A stretch of 63,819 bases of DNA, the filler included, from Octopus bimaculoides (taxonomy: Eukaryota): NCBI RefSeq assembly GCF_001194135.2. It is 5 parts of 4 records of this genome, joined end to end, with 100 filler letters (N's around TTAATTAATTAA, not from the genome) between each part and the next. Parts side by side here need not be neighbours in the genome. Positions count along the whole stretch, not along the records: positions 30,974 to 59,544 come from NC_068989.1; 4 more parts are not named here. The stretch is one strand, 5' to 3'. The position numbers and the translations under genes were made by a program. This document shows positions 31,034 through 59,544 of the stretch, piece by piece. The notes beneath the pieces are model-generated. The model was not told where the DNA came from and made no database searches. It worked only from the letters and a program-made list of their open reading frames with translations. Within the stretch, counting starts at the first letter, position 1; each line of letters begins with the position of its first letter.

Positions 31034-33511
31034 GTGTGTGTGTGTGTGTGAGTAGAGTGTGTGAGTTTGTGTGTGTGACCGCATGTGAGCATGCGTGTCA
31101 GCATTTGACAGTTATTTGAGGTTTCACGAAGCAAAGCTTCTCATATTGTTTCGATTTGAAATCCCAGACTTAGACTGAGCTTCGAAATTACAATGTCTCT
31201 GTTTGAAGAATAAATGATTAACTCTTATTTTCACATCTAGATCTCTTTATTCATATTATTTTGGTTTATATATGTGTATGTGTGTGTGCGCGCGCGCGCC
31301 CGAAACTATGCGTATATCTGCTAATACATATATAAAAACTGTGAATGTGTGCACATATACGCGTGTGTGCACGCGTATATGTCTATATGCGTGTGAATTC
31401 GAATACACACACACACATATGCACACATACACATACATTCACCTGTTCATATAATCATCGGTCGTCATAGTGACGCGGATAAAGTTGTATATTGGCTGAT
31501 AAAACTCAGCTATAACACTGGAAATATATTAACTCATATAATTATATAGAACTCTAATCTTTACCATAAAACCTCTTTTAATAGTTCAGTCGTGTCCTGT
31601 GTTTTGAGAACCATAGATAACTGCGGTTTATTAACCCTATCACTGACGATGTGCAGTGAGTATGTCTAATACGTTTAACTCTCGACTGTCCCAGTCCACT
31701 AAGATGTAATTAGCTACAACCGAGTTGTATGGCTCGCTTTTGTGAGCAGCAACAATACCGTTAAACCGATAAATGGCTCTGTTAGTTGCTTTAACGAATC
31801 CATCGTCTTTCTATGAGTGCAGCTTAACTATGTATCGAGTCCCGCTATCGTTCTTCTCCCCTTCCCTCTCTCCACGCCTTTCCCTCTATTTATATGTGTG
31901 ACATTCTAGTCTTGTTTGCATGTATGTATGTGCATTGTCTCCCCACATTTTCTCTCTCTCTCTCTATATATATATATATTTCTACGAGCATGCACGCGCG
32001 TACGCGAGTGTTTGCTTGCAGTGCTAAAAGGTACTGTCGTCCAAAACATGCAGAACGTCCAGTCAGCCGCACCAAGTCGCCAGCGCCGAAACAGCCGCGC
32101 CCATTCGACTCATTCCGGGTTGATTCGAAGTTAAATGACAATACAAACGCTACATTCGCCCTTACTGATGCCACCACCAAATTCTTGCTGCATTCTATTC
32201 TACCAACACCAGGAGCATGACAATTATAATCATCATCATCACTCTTTCCACAATCACTTCATCACTACCACCACCACCACCACCACCACCACCACCACCA
32301 CTAGTACCAACTCTATCAATCCCAAAACCACAACTAACACGTCCCCGACCACCACATCACCCAGCATAATCACAATCACCTTCACCGCCGCTGCCACCAC
32401 CGCCACCACCAACAACTGGGAGGGAGTCTGAAAAGTTGTTGACTTTAAGAATAACGCGAANNNNNNNNNNNNNNNNNNNNNNNNNNNNNNNNNNNNNNNN
32501 NNNNNNNNNNNNNNNNNNNNNNNNNNNNNNNNNNNNNNNNNNNNNNNNNNNNNNNNNNNNNNNNNNNNNNNNNNNNNNNNNNNNNNNNNNNNNNNNNNNN
32601 NNNNNNNNNNNNNNNNNNNNNNNNNNNNNNNNNNNNNNNNNNNNNNNNNNNNNNNNNNNNNNNNNNNNNNNNNNNNNNNNNNNNNNNNNNNNNNNNNNNN
32701 NNNNNNNNNNNNNNNNNNNNNNNNNNNNNNNNNNNNNNNNNNNNNNNNNNNNNNNNNNNNNNNNNNNNNNNNNNNNNNNNNNNNNNNNNGGGGGGGGTGT
32801 TAGTATGTAAAGGGCCCATCCCCTCAAGTTTGAGAATTTTTTATTCACTCCTGGAAGTATGCATTAATTATTTCAGCCCGGCTGTGTTTGTAGACAGTTG
32901 AAAAGAAGAATACTTTTAACAAAAACAAAAAAGAAAAAAGAAAATTACATGATAGCATTGTAGTTGCAGGTGGGCCCCCTTAGTCTCATGGCAACCAATA
33001 TTTTTAGCCCCAGTACGCCACTCTTTATAACCATAGAATATCCTCATTTAACCATATGATAAGTATTTTCTTCAAACAGTATTCAGGTCGTCTTTATTAT
33101 TATTATTATATTTTCCTCAACTCCTAATCTCATTATCCACAATACAATGTTAGGTTGAGTTTATTCAGAGCATGCTACCAATACATTTCTATAGCTTCTC
33201 AGTTTATATGAAATGTTATGCACTATTGATTCACACAATACATTTTAGAAATATTTTATTTGATAAAACACTTTCAAATGTACATTATTGTGATAGTTCA
33301 GAACAAAACCTAATTTTCAACAGACGTTCGTTACGCCTCTGGCTATATAAAAGACGTGCTAGTTGAGGTTTATAACACGAAATACCGTATTTTTCGGTAC
33401 AAAAAGCACACTTTTCTTCCAAATAGTTTCCCGCAAAAGTCACCCTGCGCCTTACCTGCTGAAAGTCAGGTTTTGGCTTAGATTTGGTTGGTGTTTTAAC
33501 GATGAACAATA

Positions 33512-33543
<32 letters not shown>

Positions 33544-33847
33544 NNNNNNNNNNNNNNNNNNNNNNNNNNNNNNNNNNNNNNNNNNNNNNNNNNNNNNNNN
33601 NNNNNNNNNNNNNNNNNNNNNNNNNNNNNNNNNNNNNNNNNNNNNNNNNNNNNNNNNNNNNNNNNNNNNNNNNNNNGTGTTAAAACGGGGGTAGCTGATG
33701 AAGAAGAATGTTCTCTATGTGGCTTGTGTGTTTTCTCGTCTACGTTTTGTTTGCAATGTCCTGTACCCAGATATGCACCTATACATACAAGTAGATGTCG
33801 GTATGCACATACCTGTACGTATATATGCATATACTCATTTACTATTT

Positions 33848-33888
<41 letters not shown>

Positions 33889-35905
33889 CACAGAGAGGTG
33901 GAGAGAAACACAGTCTCGAATGGTACATCTTTGAACATTGGTCTGCTCAAACAGGATTGATCTGACGCTAAGACCAACATCATCACCACCACGAGCAACA
34001 ATAACGCAAGCAGTCGACTATGCAGGAGAGATGGTGGATGGGAACGACGTAAATAACACTCTCTCGAAGTCGGATCAGCCATTAATCAAAATAATTCTAT
34101 TTGCAGGGTACCAAGGGAATAGAAATCACTGAGTGATTTTACATAGAGCAAATATAAAATTATAATAGTTTTAAAAGTTAATTTTAAAAAGTATTGAAAA
34201 TTAACTTTTTTTGTGTGTGCTGCTCTTGTTATCTCTCTCTATAAAAGGCCAAGTCACGTGCTATTTTTTTGTCTGCTAACGAGACTGTATGAAAGCAGCA
34301 GACGATCAAGCGGTAGAGAGTGGGCGAGTGACAGAAGGAGAATTAAAAAGCGAGTGAATTTGTATTAAGAAATATTACGCTGCTCGGAGAGGCAGACTAA
34401 CAAATGAAAAAGAAACAGAGTGGAACTCGACAAAGGATCGCATTTCGAAACAATTAACCGGGTGTAAAAGACTGTAGAGTCACGTAGGTGTAGTGTAGAG
34501 TCCAGTAAACTAATCGACCGGGCGCTTTTCTTGAAATTACAGGTTATGAAAATCAGAGAAAACTCGAAGAAGTCAGCGCTTTTAGGATATATAATGGGAT
34601 TAAGGGATTATCACAGTGAATATTTTTATACAAAATTTGCGTAATTTAAAACATATTCAAATAAATTACGTTCCGTCATGTGTGAGCATTTAAAAAAAGG
34701 GAGGTCATTTACAATGGGTGTCTTTCGACTAAGGACGAATTAAATTAAGCTGGCGTGTGTGGAAGTAAAGCCTTACGGCAGGGACATAAGATTTGACAGG
34801 CACAGGGTGAAATGCAGATATTGCGCGAATAGTAGTCGAACCGAGAAAGAAAGGTCAGGCTTGGCCGAACACCGGTCACGTGGGGGGAGAGAAGAGAGAG
34901 AAGTAGGGGCAGAGGAATAGAAGAATTAAGGAAGGGCGAGAAAAAATGAAAGAGACAGAGTGAAGTAAAAGAGGAGGGAAGGTGAGCATGAAGAGAAAGC
35001 CAGGAAATGTGAGAGAGGGGGAACGAAAGAACGAAGAGTGGAATGAATGAAGTAAGTGTGAAGGGGCTGATATGTAAGTATATATATATATATACATGCA
35101 TAATACATACGTATACGTACATACATACATACTACCNNNNNNNNNNNNNNNNNNNNNNNNNNNNNNNNNNNNNNNNNNNNNNNNNNNNNNNNNNNNNNNN
35201 NNNNNNNNNNNNNNNNNNNNNNNNNNNNNNNNNNNNNNNNNNNNNNNNNNNNNNNNNNNNNNNNNNNNNNNNNNNNNNNNNTGTGACGTACTTAAGATTT
35301 CATGATGGCCACAGTCCAGCTCTGCCCTCGGCAGAATTGTATTAAAATCAAACAATGAGACTACCCCTACCTTACCTTAACTAATCACAAACCAACTCCT
35401 CTCTTAAAATTTCAGTTCCATTTCGCTTGATTAAGGAATTAGATTGCATTTTTGTGTTTGTTTGAATATTTGTTGTTGTTATTTTTTTTTTTTCAAGTTG
35501 TTCAAGCAAAAACTCATTATGTAGATGGGTTGTCGGCGTGCAGGGCGTGGATGGTGGGGAAGGGTGAATGCTGTTGTTGTTGTTTTAATTAAATCTACGC
35601 CTGCGCGTCATTGTTTAAGACACGTAGTTGTAATTATAAGCATAGTTATTGTTTATACCATTAACGTAAGCCTGTCTATATTATCTGTACGCGCGCGCGT
35701 GTGCGTGCGTGCGTGTGTGTGTGCGTGCGTGCGTGTGAACGTGCGTGTACTTACAGATGTATGTTTGTGTGTGTACGCGCGTATGTGTGTGTGTGTGTGT
35801 ACACATATATACATACATATACACACGCACAATAAACACATATATATATACATTCTGAAAAATATAGACACATACATATACATATTCATACACACACACA
35901 CAAAC

Positions 35906-37958: not shown

Positions 37959-38174
37959 GAAGTCTATGAGGATTACTTAATAAAGGTTTTGAAGTGTTAA
38001 GGTGATTTTTCGAAAAGAGTTTTTAAAAAATGCTACTAAACTTTTTGAGAAGTTTTTTTCTAGTGTGTGAGCGCTTTCGTTAAACCTTTTCAAACACACG
38101 AGTTCGGATGGATGAATGTGTATTTATGTTTTGACAGAATTTGATTGCAGAATGTGAAGACGGATGTAATACCT

Positions 38175-38636
38175 ATTTCGTTATTGCCCACAAGGGGCTA
38201 AACATAGAGGGAACAAACAAGAACAGACGAACGGATTAAGTCGATTACATCGACCCCAGTGCGTAACTGGTACTTAATTTATCGACTCCGAAAGGATGAA
38301 AGGCAAAGTCGACCTCGGCGGAATTTGAACTCAGAACGTAACGGCAGACGAAATACCGCTAAGCATTTCGCCCGGCGTGCTAACGTTTCTGCCAGCTCGC
38401 CGCCTTAACGATTCTTTTTTACTCTAGGAACAAGGCCCGAAATTTTGGGGGCGGCCGCCGGTCGATTAGATCGACTCCAGTATGCAACTGGTACTCAAAT
38501 TATCGACTCCGAAAGGATGAAAGGCAAAGTCAACCTCGGCGGAATTTGAACTCAGAACGTAAAGACAGACGATGCATAGCGATATCGCTATGCACTTCGC
38601 CCGGCGTGCTAACGATTTCAGCAGCTCACCGCCTTC
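38175..38636 (-). mobile_element. Two tandem SINE family B copies with different 3' tails
   Basis: Heads GGCGGCGAGCTGGCAG end at about 38406 and 38636; shared core GTCGACTTTGCCTTTCATCCTTTCGGAGTCGATAA. Confidence 0.85.
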
Positions 38637-40009: not shown

Positions 40010-40410
40010 CCCCTGGTGGGTAATAAAGAAATCGGTATTTCATCTGCCGCTACGTTCTGAGTTCAAATTCCGCCGAGGTCGACTTTACTTTTCATTCTTT
40101 CGGGGTCGACAAATTAAGTACCAGTTACGCACTGGAGTCTATGTAATCTACTTAATCCCTTTGTCTGTCCTTGTTTGTCTCCTCTATGTTTAGCCCCTTG
40201 TGGGCAATAAAGAACTAAGAAACAGCACACCGAGCGAAATGCTTAGCAGTATTTCGTCTGTCTTTACGTTCTGAGTTCAGATTCGACTTTGCCTTTCATT
40301 CTTTCGGGGTCGATAAGTTAAGTACCAGTTGCTTACTGGGTCGATCTAAGTCGACTGGTCCCCTCACCCTGCCAAAAAAATTTCGAGTCTTGTGCCTAGG
40401 GTAGGAAAGA
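40010..40410 (+). mobile_element. Two tandem SINE family B copies
   Basis: GTTCTGAGTTCAAATTCCGCCGAGGTCGACTTT core; the two copies end in different tails. Confidence 0.75.
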
Positions 40411-40659
40411 ACATTTCTACATAAAGAAGGGCAATTTCAAATTTGAGGATCATCAATTATTATGAAAGTCTACTCTTAAAGTGACTGACTGCATTTGACT
40501 CAATAATCATCTTTGATCTGGGGGCTGTTTGAGCGTAAATTAATACCAATTTGAATTGATCTTGCTTGAATAGGTTCACTATCTTACTAGTTCGTTGAAT
40601 AATTTCTTAGAAAATTATGTGCGCGTGCGTGTTTGTGAGTGTATGTGTGTTTTATTCTT

Positions 40660-42166: not shown

Positions 42167-44917
42167 ATGAAATCGGTTAATATAAATACTAAAGATTGCA
42201 CGAAGGTTATTGTGTACGCGTTCGATAAAGTTTGTTTTGAAACTATGGTATTCCCTCACACGGTCGGTCATGAGTGCATGGCTTTTGCTATCCACCAACT
42301 TGGATTAACAGACGCAAGATATTTCGGTTTCCGTCATGTCACTAGTGACTTGAGAGTTGAATGGATTGATTTGAATAAACGTTTGGGAAAGCAACTCGAC
42401 AAAGATTGTAAGCAACATTGTTTTTATTTTGGAGTGATGTACTATATATCGCGTGCTTATAACATTAAAGATGAGGTTGCACTGTATCAGTATTTCAGGC
42501 AACTTCATGTTGATTATTTATATAGTCAGTATGATTGTTTACTTGAAAGGGCTATCAAACTGGCTTCGTTTTACCTTCGAGTGATTCTAGGTCCATACGA
42601 TCCCCAAAAGCATACGGCTGCGACAGTGAGCCGCCAGCTTCTTTTTCCTGTTAGCATATGGAAGGACGAGAAAATTGCTGCAGATGCTCAAGAAAAAGCT
42701 TTTCAGAATTACCAAACCCTTAATATAACTTCTAAAACTAGTATGGTTTTTTATATAATTGAATTCGAGTCTGCGACGTACTACGGACTAGAGTGTCACT
42801 CTGCCCTGCTTTCCGAGAGACGAGAGGCGGTGCATCTAATAACATCCTACAATGGTATCATGATAAAATATTTAACATCCCCTAATGCTTTACTCCTCAA
42901 GTGGTCAGATATTGTCGCAATCACACGCTCTCAAAAGTCTAGTATAATTATCCAACAGCAATCTCGCTCCATACAACTAGAACTGGCTGATAAGAACAGA
43001 GCAAAATATTTCTTCCAAATGGCTTTCCTTTTGATGCACTTTTATCAAGATAATCCAGAGTTCTGCGACAGATCGTCAAAGGAACCTGCCAAGCCTGACG
43101 GCTACGAATCTTACTCATTGCTGCTATCAACTTCTCAGTCGGAGACTCTGAGATCCGTTCTTCGTTACCAGCAGTCGCTGACTTCTATTCCTGACAACAT
43201 TCAGTTATCTCCAAAAACTCTTCATGAAGCTGCTGAAACTGCGGAATACCTCCTCGCACAACCCTCACGTCCAAAACAAACTGCTCTAGGTGCAACAGAA
43301 GCAATTGCTAGGCCATCGAAACCCGTAGCGAGTGTCAGAACTGCTGAGGTACGTCTTGATGAAGAATTTTTCTTGACTCATTCTAAGGATATAAAATATG
43401 AAGCGAAGAAACTTAACAAAGGTTGTCAAACGCAACCTTTTTTGACATCTATGATTAATGAGCGATTCCAGAAGTATACTGAAGCTAGTCCGATGCGTTT
43501 ACTTTCTCAAACTGTAAAAAATATTCTGCAGTATCTAGATGAAATAGAAAAGACGGAACGTGAAACCCAAGCGGATATTAAATCTAAACAAAGTACGGGA
43601 AAACATTTCTCCGATTCGCAACCATTGCAAGAATGTGGCATTCCTTATAGACCTCCACCCAAATATCCATTTCCAAAAACCAAGTCGAAGGATACGGACA
43701 TAGACTATACGAAACCTATTACCCCAGGGCAAATTTTGAAGAGAATTCAAGACATCCAAATACGAGATAAAAGCACTGAGGCTGTTTCACCCGCTAAATC
43801 GGAGAAAAGTAAAGAGTCAAAAGTTTCTGAAACTCCTATGCTGCCTAGTAGGGAGTACGCACGTCTGGAACCTGCGAAAAGTGAGCCAGTTCATCAATCC
43901 CTATCTAAAGCGGAGTTGTTGGCCCTAGATGAAAGTTCTAAAGGAGCTAAACATAAGCATTCCAAGAAGCCATTTATTATGGTGGCTTCAAATGCACTTA
44001 AAGAAATTCGAAGTAGAGATAAATATGAAAATCTGCAACGTAAATTAAATGAGGGCCAGGTTTTCGCTGAGTTTCGCTCAACTGGCGTAAAAAGTCAACA
44101 AATGCCTTGTTCTGTTGGTTATCATTTTGAAAACGCTATTAGAAACCGCTATCAATCTGTTGTACCTTATGACGAAAATCGTGTACAACTGACTGGAAGA
44201 CTTGAGAATGTATTCGGTTATATAAATGCGTCTAGTATAAAATGGAGACGCGGTCCGCATGAATTGAGCTTCATTGCAGCTCAAGCGCCGCTAAAAAATA
44301 ATCTCGAAGATTTTTGGCAAATGGTTTGGGAACAAAAGGTTTCTATAATAATTATGCTGAATTCTATAGATAACGAGAGTAAACTTGGCTGTTGTCTGTA
44401 CTGGCCTCAAGAATGGAATCTTGATCAAAAATTTCAGAGTGGACCGTTTACAGTTACTTTCCATACTTATAGGAGAACTCCCGAGTACTATTTGGATGTT
44501 CTGACTATCACCGATCCTTCTGGTGAGCAACAGCTAATAAGTAATCTTCATTTCACTCAATGGTCACAAGATGATTGTCCGTGTGATTTATCAATTTTTG
44601 TCAGCTTTTTGGAAGAGATTGAATCTGTACAAAATCTTATGCGCACTAAACATCCCGTCCAAGCTCCTATCGCTGTGCTGTGTCATGATGGAGTTGGTCG
44701 TACTGGTGTCCTAATAATGTCTTATATTATGAAATATTGTCTAAAGTGTGACCTTGAAATGAATCTGCAAAATTTGCTTGGCTTCCTCCGCTCCAATAGA
44801 ATGCTTATGGTTACTTCATTAAAACAATATATTTCCGTTTATGAAGCTTTGATTTATTTCCTGAAAGGACAATTTTCTCCTCCAAAAACGTATCTCGTTG
44901 GTCCATTTAAGATTTAA
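42167..44917 (+). CDS. PTPN14-like: Single-exon FERM-domain protein tyrosine phosphatase-like protein (PTPN14/PTPN21/Pez family), probable pseudophosphatase
   Basis: 916-aa uninterrupted ORF with in-frame TAG upstream (42143-42145). N-terminal FERM (YFGF..WIDLNKRLGKQLDK..FYFGVMYY..YQYF); RPPPKYP; LQRKLNEGQVFAEF helix typical of PTPN14/21; NRY, YINAS, IAAQAP, DFWQMVWEQ, CX5R motif, RMLMV...QY. Confidence 0.92.
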   Translation: MKSVNINTKDCTKVIVYAFDKVCFETMVFPHTVGHECMAFAIHQLGLTDARYFGFRHVTSDLRVEWIDLNKRLGKQLDKDCKQHCFYFGVMYYISRAYNIKDEVALYQYFRQLHVDYLYSQYDCLLERAIKLASFYLRVILGPYDPQKHTAATVSRQLLFPVSIWKDEKIAADAQEKAFQNYQTLNITSKTSMVFYIIEFESATYYGLECHSALLSERREAVHLITSYNGIMIKYLTSPNALLLKWSDIVAITRSQKSSIIIQQQSRSIQLELADKNRAKYFFQMAFLLMHFYQDNPEFCDRSSKEPAKPDGYESYSLLLSTSQSETLRSVLRYQQSLTSIPDNIQLSPKTLHEAAETAEYLLAQPSRPKQTALGATEAIARPSKPVASVRTAEVRLDEEFFLTHSKDIKYEAKKLNKGCQTQPFLTSMINERFQKYTEASPMRLLSQTVKNILQYLDEIEKTERETQADIKSKQSTGKHFSDSQPLQECGIPYRPPPKYPFPKTKSKDTDIDYTKPITPGQILKRIQDIQIRDKSTEAVSPAKSEKSKESKVSETPMLPSREYARLEPAKSEPVHQSLSKAELLALDESSKGAKHKHSKKPFIMVASNALKEIRSRDKYENLQRKLNEGQVFAEFRSTGVKSQQMPCSVGYHFENAIRNRYQSVVPYDENRVQLTGRLENVFGYINASSIKWRRGPHELSFIAAQAPLKNNLEDFWQMVWEQKVSIIIMLNSIDNESKLGCCLYWPQEWNLDQKFQSGPFTVTFHTYRRTPEYYLDVLTITDPSGEQQLISNLHFTQWSQDDCPCDLSIFVSFLEEIESVQNLMRTKHPVQAPIAVLCHDGVGRTGVLIMSYIMKYCLKCDLEMNLQNLLGFLRSNRMLMVTSLKQYISVYEALIYFLKGQFSPPKTYLVGPFKI

Positions 44918-47349: not shown

Positions 47350-47765
47350 GGGCGGCGAGCTGGCAGAAGCGTCAGCACGCCGGGCGAAATGCTTAGTATT
47401 ACGCCTGTCAGTACGTTCTGAGTTCAAATTCTGCTGAGGTCGACTTTGCCTTTCATCCTTTCGGAGTCGATAAATTAAGTACCAGTTGCATACTGGAGTC
47501 GATCTAATCGACTGGTCTCCTCCCCAAAAATTTCGAGCCGTGTGCCTAGAGTAGAAACGAATATCTTACTGGCAGAAATGTTAGCACGCCGGAAAAAATG
47601 CCTTGCAGCATTTCGTCTGCTGTTATGTTCTGAGTTCAAATTCCGCCGAGGTCGACTTTGCCTTTCATCCTATCGGGCTCGATAAAATAAGTACTAGTTG
47701 AGCACTGGGGCCGATGTAATCGACTTAGCTCCTCCCCATGAAATTGCTAGCCTTGTATTAAAATT
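47350..47765 (+). mobile_element. Nested SINE family B pair
   Basis: Young copy at about 47350-47562 is flanked by a 17-bp direct repeat AATATCTTACTGGCAGA (47333-47349 / 47560-47576) that includes the head of the second copy. Confidence 0.85.
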
Positions 47766-47971
47766 TGAAATCAATATTTTGCTATTCAATATTGCCGAAA
47801 TATCGATCAACAGATACATCTTCCAATGTTATTTCCAACTTGTGAGAGCTGCAATATATGGTTGCAATTTTTGCTTGAAACATATACTTTACAAAATTCA
47901 TACAACTTAATTGAAAGCATTAACGTCACAACATCCAATATTATCCTTTTGAGATATACGGTATATTTACA

Positions 47972-49510: not shown

Positions 49511-50511
49511 CGCAACGGACGGAGTATCAATAAGCAACAACATTAGCGTAAGTGGGTAAAATCGTTTCAATCTCAAATTGAAAGTTAAACAAATAACTAT
49601 TCTAACTTTGGACACAAGGTCAGCAATTTTTGAGGTCACAGAGCAAGGTCGATTACATTGGTCCTAGCACTTGGCATATAATGTTTTATCTTATCGACCG
49701 CCGAAAGGATGAAAGTCAAAGCTGACCTCGGCGGATTTGAACTCAGAACGTAAAGAACCGGAAGAAATGTAGCTAAGCATTTTGTCCAGCATGATAATGA
49801 TTTTGCCAACCTATCGCTTTAATTATCTTTTCTACAATAGATACAGGGCCTGATACAGGGTACTTGTGCGTTGATTTCACGAGCCGGCTGTTCCATTGAT
49901 CGGATCAACTGCAACTCTCTTCGTAACTGACGGACTGTCAGTTTTTTAAAATTTTTTTATTTTTTTTACGTGAAATGAAGTTTTGCTCAGGAATACAACG
50001 CACCACCTGATCATACGAAGGTGAGTGCAATACTTTAATAAACTCAGCCAGGCATCTTCACTGCTCATCTGCTTAGCAGAACAAAACCTGTAAAGGTACA
50101 AAGCTTTTGTGGTTATGGTCTGCGTGTTTTTATCAAAACCCCCTGGTTAATAGAGTATAATTAATTAGAAAATGATATTCATGGTTTTCTGGAGGTATTA
50201 CAGAATCTTTACGTAAGCGTTTAACTATGATCTTTTGGGCATTCACACGTGGTTGAATATTAAGCTGTGGCGTGTCGACGGTTTAGCTGAAACCGACAAT
50301 CGCAAATTGAGCTAATTTGTAAAATCACAAACTGTGACAAGAATACACACTAGTTTGTGGTATACAAGGTGGATTCTTCCATACCAGACACGATCACAGT
50401 TGAGAGTTTATGCATTGCTACACATTACATCTATGCAAAAACACTCATTAAACACCTGATATATATATATTTTGCTGTAAATATATATTTATAGTTTAGG
50501 CGGTGAGAGAG

Positions 50512-52098
50512 AGCGGCGAGTCGGCAGGATCGTTAGCACACCGGATAAAATGCTTAGCAACACTTCGTCCGGCGTACTGCCCAGATCGTTAGCACGCCGG
50601 TGAAAATGTTTAGCAATATTTCATCAGTCTACACGTTCCGAGTTCAAATTCCGCCGAGGTTGACATTGCCTTTCATCCTTTCGGACCCGGTGAAATAAGT
50701 ACCAGTTAAACACTGGGGTTGATGTAACCTACTTACACCTCCCCCTCACCCAAATTGCTAGCCTTATGCCAAAAATTTGAAAGGCGGCAGAATCGAGCTG
50801 GTAGAATCATTACCGTGCCGGACAAAAGGCTCAGCGGCATTTTGTCTGTATTTAACGTTCTGAGTTCAAATTCCACCCTGGTCGGCTTTCCTCCGAGATC
50901 GATTTTGCCTTTCATCCTTTTTGGGGTCGATAAATTAAGTACCAGTTGTGTACTGGAGTCGATCTAATCAACTGGCTCCTCCCCACAAATTTCAGGCCTT
51001 GTGTCTAGAGTAGAAAAGAATTTCATCTATTGTTGTTATTTTTTATATTAAAATAAGTATCCGCCAATATTCAAAAGAAATTTTGAAATATAAAAATAAC
51101 TGCGTCATACAGTAAAATTGAACTCGTGACCTAGTTTGGTCTGTAGTAATTTTGTTGCTCACTCAACGAAGTTTCTTGAGAAAGATATGATTGCCTTGTG
51201 TTGACGGTCATGATAATAAAAGTAAATGGATCCTCCGTCGGTTTCGACAATCACTATTCCAATTATTTGATCAGGGGGACTACCTAGGCATTATAATACG
51301 AATGGTTAAGGTGGTGACTTGGCAGGAACGTTAGCACGCCGGACAAAATGCTTAGCAGTATTTCGTCAGTTTTGACATTCTGAGTTCAAATTCCACCGAG
51401 GTCGACTTTACCTGTCATCCTTTCGGGCTCGATAAAGTAAGTACCAGTTGCGTACTGGGGTCGATCTAATCGACTGGCCCCCCTCCCCAGAAGTTTCGGG
51501 CCTCGTGCCTAGAGTGGAAAAGAATACGAATGGTTAAGGTGGTGAGCTGGCAGAATCGTTAGCACACTGGGCAAAATGCTGAGCGGTATTTCGTCTGTCT
51601 TTACGTTCTGAGTTCAAATTCCACTGAGGTCGACTTTGCCTTTTATCCTTTCGGGGTCGATAAAATAATTACTAACTGAGCCCTAGGGTCGATATAATCG
51701 ATTAGTCTCATCTCCACGAAAATTTCAGGTCTTGTGACTACAGCTGAGAGGATTATAATATGAGTGTTTGAGGCGGCGAACTGGCAGAATCGCTAGAGCA
51801 TCAGAAAATTTCATGGTGGCATTCATTCCGGGCCTTTGGATTTTGAGTTCAATTCCTGCCAAAGTCAGCTTTGCGTTTCATGCATTCAGCGTCGACAAAA
51901 GTACTAATAAACTAATGGGATCGATGTAATCGACTAACCCTCTTTCCCTAAAATTGCTGGCCCTAAGCTAAAATTTAAAACCGTTATGAGTGGTTAGGGT
52001 GGCGTACTGGCAGAGTCGCTAGAGCGTCCGACAAACTGCTGGGCAGTATTTCTTCCGACCCATTACGTTCTCAGTTCAAATCCCGCCGAGGTCAACTA
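50512..52098 (+). mobile_element. Head-to-tail stack of at least six SINE family B copies
   Basis: Heads near 50512, 50782, 51310, 51538, 51772 and 51998, all on the + strand; extra partial head near 50585. Confidence 0.85.
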
Positions 52099-52598
52099 GT
52101 CTCTCATTATTTTGTAAATTCAAACAAAAATGAGCAAACAGTAGCATGTATTTGAACAACATAAACACATATAGGTATGTCAAATAGCATATGATATAAA
52201 TTCTTGATTTACTAAAATTATCTCCGTTTCTAAAGAATGTACTATAGTTGCCAATTAGTTATTAAGACTGGCTCCATATGTGAAGGGAAAATAATTTCAA
52301 GACTGAAGAATTCTCCAAATTTCGAAACAATTAGCCTGTTCTTTTCTTTAGTGCCCTGTCACCTTTGGGGAATTATTGAATCTTAAGATTATCTCCCCTT
52401 CTCAAGAGGAGCAGCTCTTAATTGCCATTTGGTAAATATGACACATGCTCTTGAGGCGGAGATGATTTTAATAAATGAAAAATTTATGTTATATGGTATT
52501 TGATATACCTGTATTGACCTATAATTTTATTATGCAGATTTGACCGCGTCGTTTTAAAGTATGACTAAGTGCTCTAAACTCATGTAGTAGTGGTGATG

Positions 52599-52632
<34 letters not shown>

Positions 52633-53322
52633 AGATGGTGGTAGTGGTGGTAGTAGTAGTTGTGGTGGTAGTGGTGGTGGTGGTAATTAAAAAGAAGTCA
52701 ATGAAGCAATGTTCGTTATTTAGTGCTGAAAAGGAAAATGGTTGAACGGTGAAGGCAGTGGAGTGTTGAGGGTGGAAACAGCTGTAATATTCCCGAACCA
52801 GCAAATAAACCAGACAGAGTCATATCGACCGCACCTGCACCACCACTCTACCACAATAATAAACTGTGTATTTTGCTGTAGATTAAAATAAGTAGTAATT
52901 TAATGTAGACAAGCGAAAGTTGATTTTGCTCACGAAGTTCAGAAAAAAATAAATAAACTGAGGAAAAAGAGAAGCTGTGATATTCATGCATTTCCCTAAA
53001 AGCCTTTCACGATGTACTTGAAATGAGATGTCTTTAACCGGAAAGGGAAACTAGCACGAAACCCTGACCCTCTGGGTACGTATTCCGAATCGATAATCGA
53101 TAGTGTTAGCTGGTCCTCGTCTCTATGTTGATTGATTCTGTAGACATGTGGGTAAAAAGCTTGTTTTGCCACCGCGTGGTTTTGGGTTCAGTCCCACAGC
53201 ACGGCACCTCTAGCAAGTGTCTTCAACTATAGCCCTTGGTTGAGTGAAAGAAGCCCGTCGCATATATCGCTGAAATCTACAACTTTTTTTCCATTCTCTC
53301 TCTGTTTATTTTTCTCTTATTC

Positions 53323-53358
53323 CTTTCTGCTGAAGAGCGTAGGCTCGAAATGTAAAAG
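53323..53358 (+). ncRNA. Hammerhead-like motif with core variants, family 4
   Basis: CUUU-CUGcUGA-A-GAGC(guag)GCUC-GAAA-uG-UA-AAAG; stems I and II pair, but A6 is C and ACGU is AUGU. Confidence 0.45.
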
Positions 53359-53451
53359 ACGTTTTCATTTTTCCGAGCGTCAAACTAATACACCTGCTTC
53401 TTGTTCATACACCCGTCTTCATTTTTTGTTTTTCTATAAATAAATTTCAAC

Positions 53452-53490
<39 letters not shown>

Positions 53491-54893
53491 GTGTATATAT
53501 ATGTGTGTGTATGTATATATATGTATGTATATGTATGCATGCATGCTTGCATGTACGTATGCATGTATGTATGTATGTATGTAATGTATGTAATGTATGT
53601 GTCTATGTGTGTGTGTGTGTGTGTGTGTCTGTGCTTGTGTTTGTCTCCCACTACCGTTAAACAACCGGTGTTAGTTTGTTTACCTCCCCATAACTTAGTA
53701 ACACGGCAAAAAGGAACCGGTAGAATAAGTACAAGATTCATAAAAAAAATCAAATAAACAAAGAGTCAAATAAATATATAAATACTAGTCGATTCGTTCG
53801 ACTAAACTCTTCACGGCGGTGCTGCAGCATGGCCTCATTCATTAATTTAAACAGGTAAAAGAGAAAAGGTAGAAGATATGGAGCCCAGTATTTCTAGAGG
53901 AGAAGATAGGGAAGTTTCAAGTTTCGTTTTCTTTCTCAAGAATATTTAACCAGTTTTGAAACGAAGTGGGTCCTAACCAGAAATCGAAACCGTATCGTAG
54001 AGTCGCCATACAACTTGTTTTAACGGTGTGTGCCTTTTTCTTATCAAGATATGAAACAGGGGCAGCCTTCGGGTTGAAATCTATGCAATCATATCCCGCC
54101 TCCCTCTTCATAACTAGGCATTTAGAATCAAATTACATACGTGAAGTAGTGGTGGTGGTGAGAGTAGATCTTTGCACACACACTCATATATTTATATAAC
54201 TAAGAGAGACAGCAATGGTGTGAGTGAGTCAGTCGGTGATAAGAAACCTAAGTGGAGTGTACGTGGTTCTTAGCCATACAAATGCACTTTTCTGGCTGCC
54301 GTGTCTCCACTGAAACTGACAGAGTCTAACTTGATCGCCGACTACATTCACCCATGCGTGGTTTACAGACGTCCATACACAAATGCGTGCGTGCGGATTA
54401 ATTAATTAATTAATATCACTACCACTAATACCAACAACAAAAATATTTTTTGTTGAATTTATTTTTTCTTAATTCGTTCTTTCTTTTAAATTTTATGATA
54501 TCCAAAAAAAAAAAAAGAAGTAAAAAAGCAAAAAAAATTGAGGATAAAAACGTTATAGTTTGTTGTTGCAGCCCATTTACAATTTAAATGAAGATTTTAA
54601 AAAGATCTCACGAAAGAAAAGTTTAACTTTCAACATTAAACTAAACAACGATATCTATGACTGAGAAATATANNNNNNNNNNAAAAAAAAAAAAAAAAAA
54701 CAAGAACAGAAAATATTTAAAAAAAGCATAAATAACAAAACTATCATTTTAAATTTTGGAATCTTGTACACAGACTTTCGTGACAACGCCTTGAGAATTT
54801 ATCGGTACTTCTGTAAAATTTATTATCATTACTACTGTTATTATTAATTTATTATTGCTATTATTATTGTTATTATTATTATTATTATTATTA

Positions 54894-54928
<35 letters not shown>

Positions 54929-55386
54929 TGATGGTGTTGCTGTTATGAATTTTTTTTCTCGCCAAAATTATTTGACTCACATAATCGAAACTTAATTTTC
55001 TTTTTTTGTATCCTTTTTTTCTATCTCTATTGAACATATAACTTTTTGACTTTATCAATTAGCACTGTTTCGTTTCTCTAGACACCCTGTGGCCACGGCA
55101 GAAACAGTTATATTTATATAGATTGCTTTCGACCAATCTTTATTATTGATTTAATTTAGTGTCCTGTTGTATATATTGCATTCAATCCCTAGGCAAGATT
55201 CTTAAATCTACTAGCGCAGAAGAGCTCTGTCATTAAGAAATTATTATTTTTATATAGAATATTATTTATAAAATACTTTTTGTGTGAAGACGTTTAGAAA
55301 ACCAAAAAAAAAGAAAAACATTGATTTATGAAATAACGATAATAATAATAATATCAATTAAATTTTACAAATAATATAAAATAGAT

Positions 55387-57696
55387 ATGGATAACGAATT
55401 TGTGAACTATGTTAAAACTGAGACCAAGGTAAATGAGAAGTCTTTGACAAATCTGGAAGGATATAACCAGGATAGTTCAGTTAAATCAACCGTGATTGGA
55501 CAGCCAAGTACGTCAATGGAAATTAATGGAAATATTTCCACAGAGACCTGTCAACTGCAGGACACACTGTATGCAGAAAGTAACAACACAACAGACACGT
55601 CATATCCGAAGGTCCTGTCTAATGCTGAACCTAATTTCTTCCAATCGACTTTGAACGAAGCGACAGATTCGCAAATGTATGTTCCTGTAGTTAACAACAC
55701 TTTCAGCGAATTAGCTGATGGAAACAACATTGAGGGGGACAGTTTTAAACCAGAAAATATTGAAGAAGTAAAACTTATGAACACATCGTCGGCGAAATGT
55801 GACATAGAATCTGGTGAGGTCATTCAGGATGCCATTTTAATAGAACAAAAACAAAGTTCGGTAGAGTTATCTGAAAATATTTTTCCTGTAGTAACTGATA
55901 CACACGCGCTTAATTCTGAGGAATTACATATCACCGGAAATCTTACTAACCTATCAGAAGGTGATTTGAATTTCAGCACTGGCATCGAAGGTGTATGTGG
56001 TTCATACACCGAAACAGAAGTTGCTCCTGATTACATCCAAGTTTCGTCTCACAAAGTAGCAGAGTTTTCTACAGAACCTACACGTGAAAGAGCTGAAAAA
56101 CTCGAAGAGAATCTGAAAAATGTTTCAACATCTGCGTCGTCTTATTATGAAGAAGTAGGAAATGTTGAAAGCGTTAATCCCGAAATAATTGAAAAACCGT
56201 CCGTATTTTCTGTTGGAGATGTCGATAGCTCACTGGAAATCCTTGAAGAGAAACCTGAAGTCGTTTCTTTTAATCAATTTACATTAAAGACCGAAACAAT
56301 TGGAGGAGACAAAATATTAGAAGAGAGAACAAATGTGGAAATAACCGAAGAATTAAATGTGCAAAACGCAACCATAGACAATATGATGGTATCAGAACAC
56401 TTTGAAATTGTCGAGAAAGGAAACGTGGAAACCGATAGCAATTTTATTGGGACACCCAAAGATAATGATTCTACCGTTTTATTTGAACAAGTTGACGTAC
56501 AGGTCGAAGAATTTGGAATTTCTGCTTCAACAAAACCGTTGATGACTTCTATCGAACAATCTGAAAATTTTAAAATGAATATTCCAAATGAAACGGAAAC
56601 ATCGTTTCCCGGGAAAATTCTTCCGTCCAGGGAAGACAGTGGTTTACTTGAAAACATGGTAGCTGTTGCACCTTTGGTAGAAAACCAAACGGTTGTAGTT
56701 CAAAAGGAAGAAATGTTATTGTTGGAAAACGAAGACAATAATGTTGTTGATATGACAGTAAAAGGGGTAAAACTTATAGAAACGATTGTGAATGAACCGG
56801 CTGAAGAAATTTCTAGAGAACCAATGGGAAGTCTTAAGATTGCCACTGAACTCTCAAAAGTCCAGGAAGAAAATAAAGTGAAAATAACAGAATTTGAAGC
56901 TGTAGAAAACCACGTTCCAACAAAGAAATTAACTGAAATAGAAAGTCATGATATAAAAACCTTTTCTATGGCAGATAAAAATACGATGGAAGCACCAACA
57001 TATATTGGAGCTGAAGTTTCTTCGAACGAAAACATCGACGTATTTTCAGTGAAACCAAATGAAAGTACGAAACTCGATTCTCTAGAAACAGAAACGATTG
57101 TGACCACCAAAGATGTTGACAGACGTGAGAAGAAACCAGAGCACATTGTATCGAGTGAACGAAAGCAAATTCCAGTAACAATGACAGAAAATAATCGTCC
57201 AAGACAAACTGACATTCTAAGGTTGACCAGAGGAAAGACTAAACGCGAGGCGAAAATGATTATGTCACAGGTAGCATTTGATAGAGCTTCAGAAATATTG
57301 AAAATTGTTCAAAACAAATCGAATACATATGAAGATGGTATCTATGTTCACCCCACGCACCGGGCCTATGCCACAGAAATAAAAGACGGTAATATAAATC
57401 TTTTGAAATATATCAGGCTTAGTGATGGTCAGTTATCAGATGATTCCAATCATTACGAGTATTTGAAGTCATTCAAAAGCCAGAACCGTAATGGCTATAT
57501 CAACATGAAAATCAATGGGAGGAAACGGCGTAAAATGGTTGGTCGATTCATCTACGAATGCTGTAACAAAATTACTTTGCTGGAAAATATAGCCATAAAT
57601 TACATTGATGGTAATAAACAGAATCAAAACCCTTCAAACTTATCGATTCAGATCGAATATGGCGGAGGAGAAAAACACAAAAATAAAACAAAGTAA
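55387..57696 (+). CDS. Single-exon 769-aa acidic (Glu-rich) protein with C-terminal degenerate NUMOD4/HNH-like domain
   Basis: 2.3-kb non-repetitive ORF in AT-rich DNA, in-frame TAA upstream (55372-55374), AATAAA at 57732. C-terminus GYINMK...KMVGRFIYEC...INYIDGNKQNQNPSNL aligns by eye to HNH_3 GY.......VHR.V.E.F....V.HIDGNK.NN...NL. Confidence 0.8.
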   Translation: MDNEFVNYVKTETKVNEKSLTNLEGYNQDSSVKSTVIGQPSTSMEINGNISTETCQLQDTLYAESNNTTDTSYPKVLSNAEPNFFQSTLNEATDSQMYVPVVNNTFSELADGNNIEGDSFKPENIEEVKLMNTSSAKCDIESGEVIQDAILIEQKQSSVELSENIFPVVTDTHALNSEELHITGNLTNLSEGDLNFSTGIEGVCGSYTETEVAPDYIQVSSHKVAEFSTEPTRERAEKLEENLKNVSTSASSYYEEVGNVESVNPEIIEKPSVFSVGDVDSSLEILEEKPEVVSFNQFTLKTETIGGDKILEERTNVEITEELNVQNATIDNMMVSEHFEIVEKGNVETDSNFIGTPKDNDSTVLFEQVDVQVEEFGISASTKPLMTSIEQSENFKMNIPNETETSFPGKILPSREDSGLLENMVAVAPLVENQTVVVQKEEMLLLENEDNNVVDMTVKGVKLIETIVNEPAEEISREPMGSLKIATELSKVQEENKVKITEFEAVENHVPTKKLTEIESHDIKTFSMADKNTMEAPTYIGAEVSSNENIDVFSVKPNESTKLDSLETETIVTTKDVDRREKKPEHIVSSERKQIPVTMTENNRPRQTDILRLTRGKTKREAKMIMSQVAFDRASEILKIVQNKSNTYEDGIYVHPTHRAYATEIKDGNINLLKYIRLSDGQLSDDSNHYEYLKSFKSQNRNGYINMKINGRKRRKMVGRFIYECCNKITLLENIAINYIDGNKQNQNPSNLSIQIEYGGGEKHKNKTK

Positions 57697-59306
57697 ACTA
57701 CACAAGCTTTTCAGAAGAGATGCCATACTAAAATAAACAACAACAAATCGATATGGTATTGCTGGGCTGCTGCTGTTGTTAGTGAAGGTGGTGGTGGTGG
57801 TGGTGGTGGTGGTGGTGATGATGATGCTGGTGGTGATGGTGGTGCTGTTGATGTAGGTGGACATTGTGTGCACATAGTAGAAGAGAGATTGATTCGCCTT
57901 TCAATGCATATTAAGTCAGATGCCTTACGTATTTCAGTTCCATTCGGCTTCGCCTTACATCCCAGCTGGTTCGATTATATTAAGTATCAGTACCACACTG
58001 ATCGATTCAGTCAACTAAAATGCCTTGCCCACCACCATTTAAAACAAAATGACATTGCACTTCGTTAAAAGAAAACGCCTTCATCATCATCATCATCATC
58101 ATCATGAAGAAAAAGGTAAAAGTTTGGAAGCAAACTTTTAATNNNNNNNNNNNNNNNNNNNNNNNNNNNNNNNNNNNNNNNNNNNNNNNNNNNNNNNNNN
58201 NNNNNNNNNNNNNNNNNNNNNNNNNNNNNNNNNNNNNNNNNNNNNNNNNNNNNNNNNNNNNNNNNNNNNNNNNNNNNNNNNNNNNNNNNNNNNNNNNNNN
58301 NNNNNNNNNNNNNNNNNNNNNNNNNNNNNNNNNNNNNNNNNNNNNNNNNNNNNNNNNNNNNNNNNNNNNNNNNNNNNNNNNNNNNNNNNNNNNNNNNNNN
58401 NNNNNNNNNNNNNNNNNNNNNNNNNNNNNNNNNNNNNNNNNNNNNNNNNNNNNNNNNNNNNNNNNNNNNNNNNNNNNNNNNNNNNNNNNNNNNNNNNNNN
58501 NNNNNNNNNNNNNNNNNNNNNNNNNNNNNNNNNNNNNNNNNNNNNNNNNNNNNNNNNNNNNNNNNNNNNNNNNNNNNNNNNNNNNNNNNNNNNNNNNNNN
58601 NNNNNNNNNNNNNNNNNNNNNNNNNNNNNNNNNNNNNNNNNNNNNNNNNNNNNNNNNNNNNNNNTTTAAAATAGGTACATACCTATGTAACTTATATATC
58701 AGATATCCATAACAACAATATCTTTGTATTCTAAACTTATATTTCATAGTATATGATCCCATTTCAACTAAACAGTTAATCTAAAGCAGCGGTCCTCAAT
58801 CACCATTTCGGAGCATTTGGCAACCGTATAACCTTCTGTGACAAACAATTAAAAACAAAAAAAATGAAGATAGGGGAGCACACTCAACATATGATACATC
58901 CTTTTTCCTGGAGAAATATTTCTCGTTTTTATTTGTTTGCTGTGAATATCATGTTGTGGCTCTCGTTCAGGTGACTGAATTATAAAAATAACCATGATCA
59001 TTTTTATCAAATGTTTTCAAATTAAAAACTTATTTTGGTGGTATTTTTAAAATCATACTGCGACATTAATCGGGACAAGTTGATCTAAAGCAGTGTTCAT
59101 ATTTTAGTTTCAACACTATGATTGCATCGATCGCGCTTAGCCACAACTCACAGTCTGAAGCAACTAATAAAAAAAAAAAGTAATAATAACTATTTAACAA
59201 GGAAAGTAAAAAAAAAATTACACAGAAACGAACCAAATCTGAAAACGAAGGATTTCATCAGAAAACGCCATTTATCCACCCCCTCTCTCTCTCCCGACCT
59301 CCTTAA

Positions 59307-59337
<31 letters not shown>

Positions 59338-59491
59338 AATATTATTAACTACATATACCTAATGAATATGCTTCGTGTATTTTCCGGTGGCTGCAATAGC
59401 GTGGTGGAGTACATACGCTATAAAAGCGCCGGTTGTTAAAACACCCCAATCATGGACAGGCGAGGTAACTCACCTTCAATCTGCTTTTATC

Positions 59492-59544
<53 letters not shown>

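Follow-up and report, generated by a model that had tools for sequence, protein, structure and literature searches.

A single-exon gene of Octopus bimaculoides (assembly GCF_001194135.2), located on a 28.6-kb piece of NC_068989.1 within the 63,819-nucleotide (nt) stretch of DNA analyzed here (the window), encodes a 769-amino-acid (aa) protein whose C-terminal ~105 aa are, in our judgment, established as homologous to the I-HmuI-type HNH_3 homing endonucleases of phages and giant viruses. We consider it probable that this is a lineage-restricted octopod host gene, the C-terminal module of which derives from such an endonuclease, has ceased to cut, and most likely binds DNA in combination with a long acidic effector or regulatory arm. 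An earlier, by-eye interpretation of the same DNA (the first-pass annotation) had described a nuclease-dead endonuclease module of viral or Polinton type; the homology, the catalytic loss, the intronless character, and the purifying selection proposed therein are upheld by the present analysis, while its Polinton attribution, NUMOD4 profile assignment, and nuclear localization signal are not.

Homology, predicted fold, and catalytic positions of the C-terminal module

The resemblance of the C-terminal peptide to phage and large-virus HNH_3 enzymes, initially perceived by eye, is borne out by several profile- and sequence-based comparisons. In a phmmer search of aa 601 to 769 against 1.84 billion representative proteins, seven proteins were recovered at an E value of ≤1e-3, comprising two cephalopod clusters and five others (P0004 to P0008), with E values of 1.1e-10 (58 bits) for P0004 and 4e-5 to 8e-4 for P0005 to P0008. 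All five independently pass the Pfam HNH_3 profile (PF13392; 43 to 158 bits), most of them harboring two to four repeats of the module, and hhalign aligned their domains to a profile of the cephalopod sequences with a probability of 98.4% (E value, 1e-14); the joint profile matches I-HmuI (PDB 1U3E) at an E value of 6e-19. Four HNH endonuclease families were matched among the PHROGs, the best being phrog_959 (E value, 1.3e-6; aa 675 to 754), with phrog_59 at 7e-5. Domains with 34 to 43% identity to the module are encoded at 13 IMG/VR loci, and the best INPHARED matches were HNH endonucleases of Vibrio phages (E value, 2e-3). The Pfam HNH_3 profile itself was matched at 12.4 to 14.3 bits (E value, 0.03 to 0.13) across profile positions 18 to 36 only and returned no match to the Argonauta orthologue, while sequence searches of the PDB yielded chance L25 matches only (single domain) or nothing (cephalopod-only profile). 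The NUMOD4 profile (PF07463), which the first-pass annotation had included in its name for the module, was not matched even at an E value of ≤10; the N-terminal β-region concerned could nonetheless be modeled and aligned.

Structure prediction using the cephalopod sequences alone (n = 4) produced an unusable AlphaFold model (predicted local distance difference test score [pLDDT], 37), and that based on a 16-sequence alignment, in which HNH_3 domains were already present, reached a pLDDT of 80.8 and a predicted template modeling (TM) score of 0.78. The latter model comprises six N-terminal strands, a helix at aa 718 to 727, and a hairpin formed by aa 735 to 739 and aa 752 to 756, i.e., a predicted I-HmuI-like fold of N-terminal antiparallel β-sheets and a β-hairpin. 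Its best PDB match by Foldseek was 1U3E (probability, 0.97; E value, 0.05; TM score, 0.41), with I-PpoI lower in the list, and almost all of the top 50 matches in BFVD were phage or giant-virus HNH/NUMOD4 homing endonucleases (E values to 1e-4; TM scores of 0.5 to 0.65). The modeled β-strands of aa 651 to 700, in which a cephalopod-specific insertion is present, superpose on NUMOD4-annotated proteins.

The active site of His-Me endonucleases is defined by a His, almost invariant, in hairpin strand 1 and by a metal-holding Asn or His in the first turn of the α-helix (PMC5714182); in I-HmuI, His75 acts as the general base (PMC3384342). Residues were mapped by profile alignment to residues 10 to 94 of I-HmuI and by alignment with 20+ viral HNH_3 domains. 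His56-Arg57 of I-HmuI corresponds to octopus Gly719-Arg720, Asp74-His75 to Asn738-Tyr739, Asn83 to Gln747 (His in Argonauta), and Asn87 to Asn751, so that the three replacements initially proposed (VHR to VGR, HIDG to YIDG, and NN to NQ) are recovered as Gly719, Tyr739, and Gln747. The general-base position is occupied by His in all 20 canonical viral domains aligned and by Tyr in all four cephalopod sequences. The helix Asn, located 9 residues after the conserved Asn-Leu in each of the 11 IMG/VR relatives compared, is replaced by Gly760 in octopus and by Arg in Argonauta. Furthermore, because the protein ends at residue 769, only 13 residues after the second strand, and no helix is modeled within this poorly conserved tail, the α-helix of the ββα finger is absent. 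Given the substitution of the general-base His by Tyr739, together with the loss of the helix and the metal-binding Asn which it bears, the prediction that the module is nuclease-dead is well supported at the level of sequence, and the protein would, on this basis, no longer cut DNA. An RKRRK run which had been taken for a nuclear localization signal is more appropriately viewed as a feature of the family than as evidence of nuclear import, since K/R-rich runs align with it in homologues from phages.

Conservation and selective maintenance of the gene in octopods

The open reading frame (ORF) is uninterrupted from ATG to stop, at the coordinates initially reported, and is preceded by an in-frame stop 4 codons upstream of the ATG (stop-to-stop frame, 773 codons). 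At the local base composition (38% A), a random codon is a stop with a probability of 7.5%, and a run of 769 open codons would arise with a probability of only ~9e-27; the frame is the second longest in the 28.6-kb piece. The acidic, aromatic- and Cys-poor character previously attributed to the N-terminal part holds for aa 1 to 575, which have an isoelectric point (pI) of 4.21 and contain 19% D+E, 31% S/T/N/Q, 5.2% aromatic residues, and 3 Cys residues; this region is probably intrinsically disordered. The remainder (aa 576 to 769), including the C-terminal peptide as previously quoted, is basic, with a pI of 9.75. No family match was found in Pfam for the basic linker at aa 576 to 650, in which helices were predicted at low confidence only (cephalopod-only AlphaFold model).

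A search with the full protein retrieved an O. vulgaris protein annotated as “Hypothetical predicted protein” (P0001; 864 aa; 90% identity) and a protein of a third octopus (P0002), while exhaustive searching of the representative proteins added an Argonauta hians orthologue (P0003, GAB1603394.1; 796 aa). The intronless structure recorded in the first-pass annotation extends to all of these: the gene occupies a single 2595-nt exon on the 119-Mb O. vulgaris chromosome OX597822.1 (L001, 10001-12595), a single exon on a 27-Mb scaffold of A. hians (L004, 10001-12391), and an intact, single 772-aa ORF in the third octopus (L041). It is present at one place per genome in O. vulgaris and A. hians, self-comparison of the O. 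bimaculoides piece detected no paralogue, and the O. vulgaris flanks are collinear with window positions 52384-59520 at 85 to 94% identity. An intact, intronless ORF of 916 aa (42167..44917, + strand) with FERM_N, FERM_M, and Y_phosphatase domains is situated ~10 kb upstream on the same strand, and an intact, single 1322-aa ORF with a homologous phosphatase domain lies ~6 kb upstream, likewise on the same strand, in A. hians (L004, 146-4114, + strand). The locus is, therefore, considered orthologous between Octopus and Argonauta, as the same phosphatase ORF precedes the gene on the same strand in both. This FERM-type tyrosine phosphatase gene looks to be conserved, intronless, and possibly retrocopied; its 1322-aa Argonauta counterpart is absent from the gene calls of that record.

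The third octopus is represented by two Logan contigs from sibling runs, L002 (SRR11869394) and L041 (SRR11869390), which are 99.75% identical, end at microsatellites, and are not distinguishable from genomic DNA. In contig L002, the frame is broken once near its 5′ terminus; this break is not present in L041 and represents either a polymorphism or an assembly error, and owing to it the product called from L002 begins at an internal Met (750 versus 772 aa).

The gene is under purifying selection, as the first-pass annotation had suggested. Relative to Argonauta, at a synonymous divergence (dS) of ~1.0, the ratio of nonsynonymous to synonymous change (ω; Nei-Gojobori method) is 0.47 to 0.51 across the acidic region (aa 1 to 580), 0.31 to 0.44 across the linker (aa 581 to 650), and 0.23 to 0.28 across the domain (aa 651 to 754), and nonsynonymous change differs between the domain and the acidic region with a P value of 1e-10. 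The linker retains 28 identities with Argonauta among the 50 residues of aa 601 to 650, while aa identity per 50-residue block of the acidic region is 22 to 42%. A frame of 750 to 860 codons is kept in four genomes with all indels in frame, the exception being the 5′ disruption of L002. That the frame has remained open at a dS of ~1.0 (ω: domain, 0.25; acidic region, 0.5) and that the gene is single-copy and syntenic, argues for a maintained host gene rather than a mobile element.

In O. vulgaris, the acidic region contains a threefold tandem repeat of a unit of ~44 aa (L001, 10704-10838 and neighboring sequence), of which the window and the third octopus have one copy each. As the acidic region changes at approximately the rate of the flanks and tolerates this repeat, its evolution is consistent with a disordered arm in which constraint falls on composition and openness rather than on the exact sequence. 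Among the Octopus-type sequences (n = 3), domain dS is 0.017 to 0.08, versus 0.12 to 0.24 in the rest of the ORF (Fisher P value, 0.007 to 0.018); the part concerned corresponds to window positions 57315-57614, where nucleotide identity exceeds that of the flanks, which suggests either nucleotide- or RNA-level constraint or a local difference in rate.

Table 1. Features of the octopod gene and its upstream region (window coordinates)
Feature	Position	Strand	Description and basis
Complete single-exon coding sequence of the octopod-specific gene	55387..57696	+	769 codons plus stop; ORF listing and intact orthologues
Acidic low-complexity N-terminal region, aa 1-575	55387..57111	+	Composition; no Pfam domain
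Basic linker, aa 576-650	57112..57336	+	pI 9.89, 23% K+R
Degenerate I-HmuI-type HNH_3 module, aa 651-756	57337..57654	+	phrog_959, phmmer, hhalign, AlphaFold, and Foldseek
Codons Asn738-Tyr739, at the positions of I-HmuI Asp74-His75 (metal ligand, general base)	57598..57603	+	Profile alignment to 1U3E
Short Gly/Lys-rich C-terminal tail, aa 757-769, plus stop	57655..57696	+	Occupies the place of the α-helix with metal-binding Asn of relatives
Conserved upstream non-coding stretch, candidate promoter/5′ untranslated region	54915..55386	+	Identity to other octopuses; bounded upstream by an (ATT)n microsatellite

The candidate promoter or 5′ untranslated region listed in Table 1 is 91 to 95% identical to that of O. 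vulgaris and 87 to 90% identical to that of the third octopus, values similar to those of the acidic coding region. No viral-type ORFs were detected within 24 kb upstream or 1.8 kb downstream of the gene, the only other long ORF in the piece being the FERM-phosphatase gene. The inverted repeats which surround the gene are (TA)n/(CA)n microsatellites only, with no true terminal inverted repeats among them, in agreement with the lack of flanking viral genes and terminal repeats previously noted, and an Rfam scan of the piece returned no match. A Polinton context was rejected on the grounds that neighboring element genes are lacking and that the inverted repeats are microsatellites; the “Polinton-type” label initially applied is thus not sustained, with the relatives of the module residing in phage or giant-virus-like contigs and no element structure being apparent around the gene.

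A dispersed repeat of ~150 to 400 nt occurs in both orientations at approximately 38169-38635, 40035-40411, 47351-47770, 49686-49840, and 50584-51743, with copies that are 70 to 94% identical. The sequences flanking the O. vulgaris locus are likewise rich in this repeat, which probably represents an octopus repeat family resembling short interspersed elements (SINE-like). Assembly gaps (runs of N) are located at 32436-32810, 33560-33700, 35130-35290, and 58150-58700; as the last of these begins ~450 nt downstream of the stop codon, the 3′ end of the transcription unit is not fully readable in the window.

Origin of the module and competing explanations

All of the non-cephalopod relatives examined lie in phage or giant-virus-like contigs. 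The nearest of these, P0004 (613 aa), is encoded on a phage contig from Logan SRR30832627 (L003, 5429-7270), between an endolysin gene and a DNA polymerase gene, and contains three HNH_3-like repeats separated by Thr-rich linkers, only the third of which passes the Pfam HNH_3 profile. In its repeats, Ala stands in place of the His before Arg, the general-base position is filled by Phe, Tyr, or Pro, and the helix Asn is lacking. Because the residues missing from P0004 are the same as those missing from the octopod module, inactive HNH_3-like modules would appear to exist already in phages, and P0004, judged by its sequence, may represent an uncharacterized class of non-catalytic HNH_3-derived DNA binders; no relatives of it were found in INPHARED or IMG/VR. 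The same contig also harbors (L003, 9689-12706) a topoisomerase II/gyrase A-like gene with a canonical HNH_3-plus-NUMOD1 endonuclease at its N terminus, as an in-frame fusion or insertion. Genes of a kind typical of giant viruses (ankyrin, glycosyltransferase, and acetyltransferase) accompany P0006 on its contig.

In a neighbor-joining tree of 90 columns, the cephalopod sequences form a clade with 99.5% bootstrap support, and their grouping with the P0004 repeats attains only 66%. No relative encoded by any other animal or eukaryote was retrieved at an E value of ≤1e-3 among the 1.84 billion representatives. Group 2 of the His-Me endonucleases, to which HNH_3 belongs, is reported to comprise 28 eukaryotic, 795 viral, and 3288 bacterial members (PMC5714182). 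A search of IMG/VR for Tyr-variant relatives, using a nucleotide pattern that covered seven residues centered on the Tyr739 site, returned 20 stretches, none of which was related. The most economical reading of these data would be horizontal acquisition, from a viral or bacterial source, that predates the divergence of Octopus and Argonauta. The gene does not figure among 12 O. bimaculoides genes listed in a publication as horizontally transferred, and no paper linking HNH endonucleases with octopus genes was found in the literature searched.

With regard to function, the antiparallel sheets and hairpin constitute the sequence-reading DNA surface in I-HmuI, I-PpoI, and SMAD MH1 (PMC3384342), and both are retained in the octopod module, where they follow a conserved, strongly basic, and probably helical linker. 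It is because of this retention that a non-cutting DNA-binding module is proposed, in which, by analogy, the basic linker and the dead endonuclease fold would bind DNA. The 575-residue acidic arm may act in an effector or regulatory capacity, either as an activation or chromatin-interaction region or as an intramolecular mimic which masks the basic domain, and the gene is presumably expressed in its host. A more specific proposal, which we advance tentatively and regard as doubtful in its entirety, is that an I-HmuI-type fold of phage or giant-virus provenance, possibly inactivated prior to capture (compare P0004), has served, since before Octopus and Argonauta diverged, for sequence-specific DNA binding in a new nuclear regulator that is restricted to cephalopods and has a very long acidic effector arm.

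Several observations weigh against the interpretation of the gene as a host gene with a non-cutting, endonuclease-derived module. The gene has been called by two annotation pipelines only, and the protein of the window itself is absent from the protein collection. The Pfam HNH_3 score lies below the gathering score (14.3 versus 24.8 bits), and the Foldseek E value against the PDB is only 0.05. Since HNH_3 domains were already present in the alignment from which the confident model was derived (cephalopod-only pLDDT, 37), the structural support is not independent of that input, though it points the same way as the sequence comparisons. Moreover, the acidic region evolves approximately as fast as the flanking non-coding DNA, and in some His-Me nucleases, such as PacI, the place of the catalytic His can be taken by Tyr (PMC3384342, PMC5714182).

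This last point underlies the possibility that the module is still a nuclease or nickase which employs Tyr739 as nucleophile or base in the manner of PacI, the product thus being an active host endonuclease. Tyr739 occupies exactly the general-base position and is conserved in the four cephalopod sequences, PacI-type His-Me nucleases function with a tyrosine (PMC3384342, PMC5714182), and Asn738 as well as the Asp-Gly which follows the active site are retained. However, the tyrosine of PacI sits in an ω-loop, not in strand 1, and PacI-type enzymes keep the metal site (PMC5714182), whereas the metal-binding Asn and the α-helix are missing from the octopus protein and the second Asn of the conserved Asn pair has been lost; furthermore, the occurrence of Phe, Tyr, or Pro at the general-base position of the P0004 repeats indicates relaxed, non-catalytic use. 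We accord this possibility a low probability. We hold it no more probable that the ORF is a non-functional relic of viral, bacterial, or mobile DNA which is still open by chance, or an annotation artifact. While it is true that the orthologues are named only as hypothetical proteins, that the surroundings are repeat-rich, that the acidic region has an ω of ~0.5 and a nucleotide identity like that of the flanks, and that one individual of the third octopus (L002) carries a frame disruption near the 5′ end, persistence of a 750- to 860-codon frame in four genomes at a dS of ~1.0, with indels in frame, would be unexpected without selection at a stop probability of 7.5% per codon, and neither the domain ω of 0.25 nor the conserved synteny, single-copy state, and lack of terminal inverted repeats is in keeping with a relic.

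Conservation might instead reflect the activity of an element, should the gene be part or cargo of a recognizable mobile or viral element such as a Polinton/Maverick, an endogenous giant-virus fragment, or a homing element. HNH_3 enzymes are typically selfish homing genes, the relatives of the module reside in phage or giant-virus-like contigs, and the gene is intronless; yet each genome has a single copy, whose position is orthologous between Octopus and Argonauta, no other viral-type ORFs were detected within 24 kb upstream or 1.8 kb downstream, true terminal inverted repeats are lacking, and the catalytic residues required for homing are gone, which renders such an explanation very improbable indeed. 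Vertical inheritance of an old eukaryotic or animal HNH_3 relative which has been lost almost everywhere is, for its part, unlikely: a few eukaryotic group 2 members do exist (28; PMC5714182), and the P0004 grouping has a bootstrap value of only 66%, but the database search returned no other animal or eukaryotic relative at an E value of ≤1e-3, the non-cephalopod relatives examined are in phage or giant-virus-like contigs, and the gene contains no introns. A host gene that encodes a captured, non-cutting module thus remains the interpretation which we favor.

Comparison with known systems

Dead His-Me fingers serve as binding modules in animals, as exemplified by SMAD MH1 and the nuclease-like domain of ENPP, both of which are ancient and pan-metazoan. 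The reuse of such a finger by an animal is, therefore, known already; what is new here is the lineage-restricted variant. The octopod case is young enough to trace, being lineage-restricted, intronless, and single-copy, and its nearest relatives are still homing endonucleases of phages and giant viruses. It would provide a clean example of a selfish nuclease fold turning into a host DNA-binding domain, if the proposed binding holds, and it extends by one candidate the small set of foreign-derived genes that are specific to cephalopods.

With I-HmuI and the phage HNH_3 enzymes (1U3E; PF13392; His-Me group 2 of PMC5714182), which provide the best profile and structural matches, the octopod module shares antiparallel β-sheets, a short helix that starts at the conserved Arg, and a β-hairpin, in the same order, in addition to the I-D-G-N-K turn of the hairpin and the Asn-Leu of strand 2. 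In contrast to I-HmuI, it carries Tyr for the general-base His, Gly for the His before Arg, and Gln for the second Asn, lacks both the helix with the metal-binding Asn and the C-terminal NUMOD/helix-turn-helix DNA-binding modules, and is encoded in an animal nuclear genome as a fusion to a 575-aa acidic region rather than in an intron or a phage. P0004, the nearest non-cephalopod sequence, resembles the module in that it, too, has lost the helix Asn, the general-base His, and the His that precedes Arg, but it is phage-encoded, has no acidic region, and consists of three modules in tandem, which Thr-rich linkers connect.

A comparable recruitment is represented by the AP2/ERF plant factors, a host transcription factor domain thought to derive from an HNH-AP2 homing endonuclease; ERF-type proteins and AP2 modules are listed with His-Me group 2 (PMC5714182). 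Plants, however, recruited the accessory AP2 domain and not the nuclease fold, and a Pfam search of the octopus protein gave no AP2 match. The closest functional analogy to what is proposed for the octopod protein is SMAD MH1, a degraded His-Me endonuclease which has been kept as an animal DNA-binding domain (PMC3384342, PMC5714182) and which combines a His-Me fold devoid of catalysis with a retained DNA-binding β-sheet surface. SMAD MH1 differs in belonging to group 16, closer to I-PpoI, in being pan-metazoan and zinc-binding, and in having retained the helix; the octopod module, for which the Pfam search gave no MH1 match, derives independently from the I-HmuI/HNH_3 group and is restricted to its lineage. 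Should the more specific proposal of a nuclear regulator prove true, this module would represent the second independent animal transcription factor domain to have arisen from a His-Me endonuclease, after SMAD MH1.

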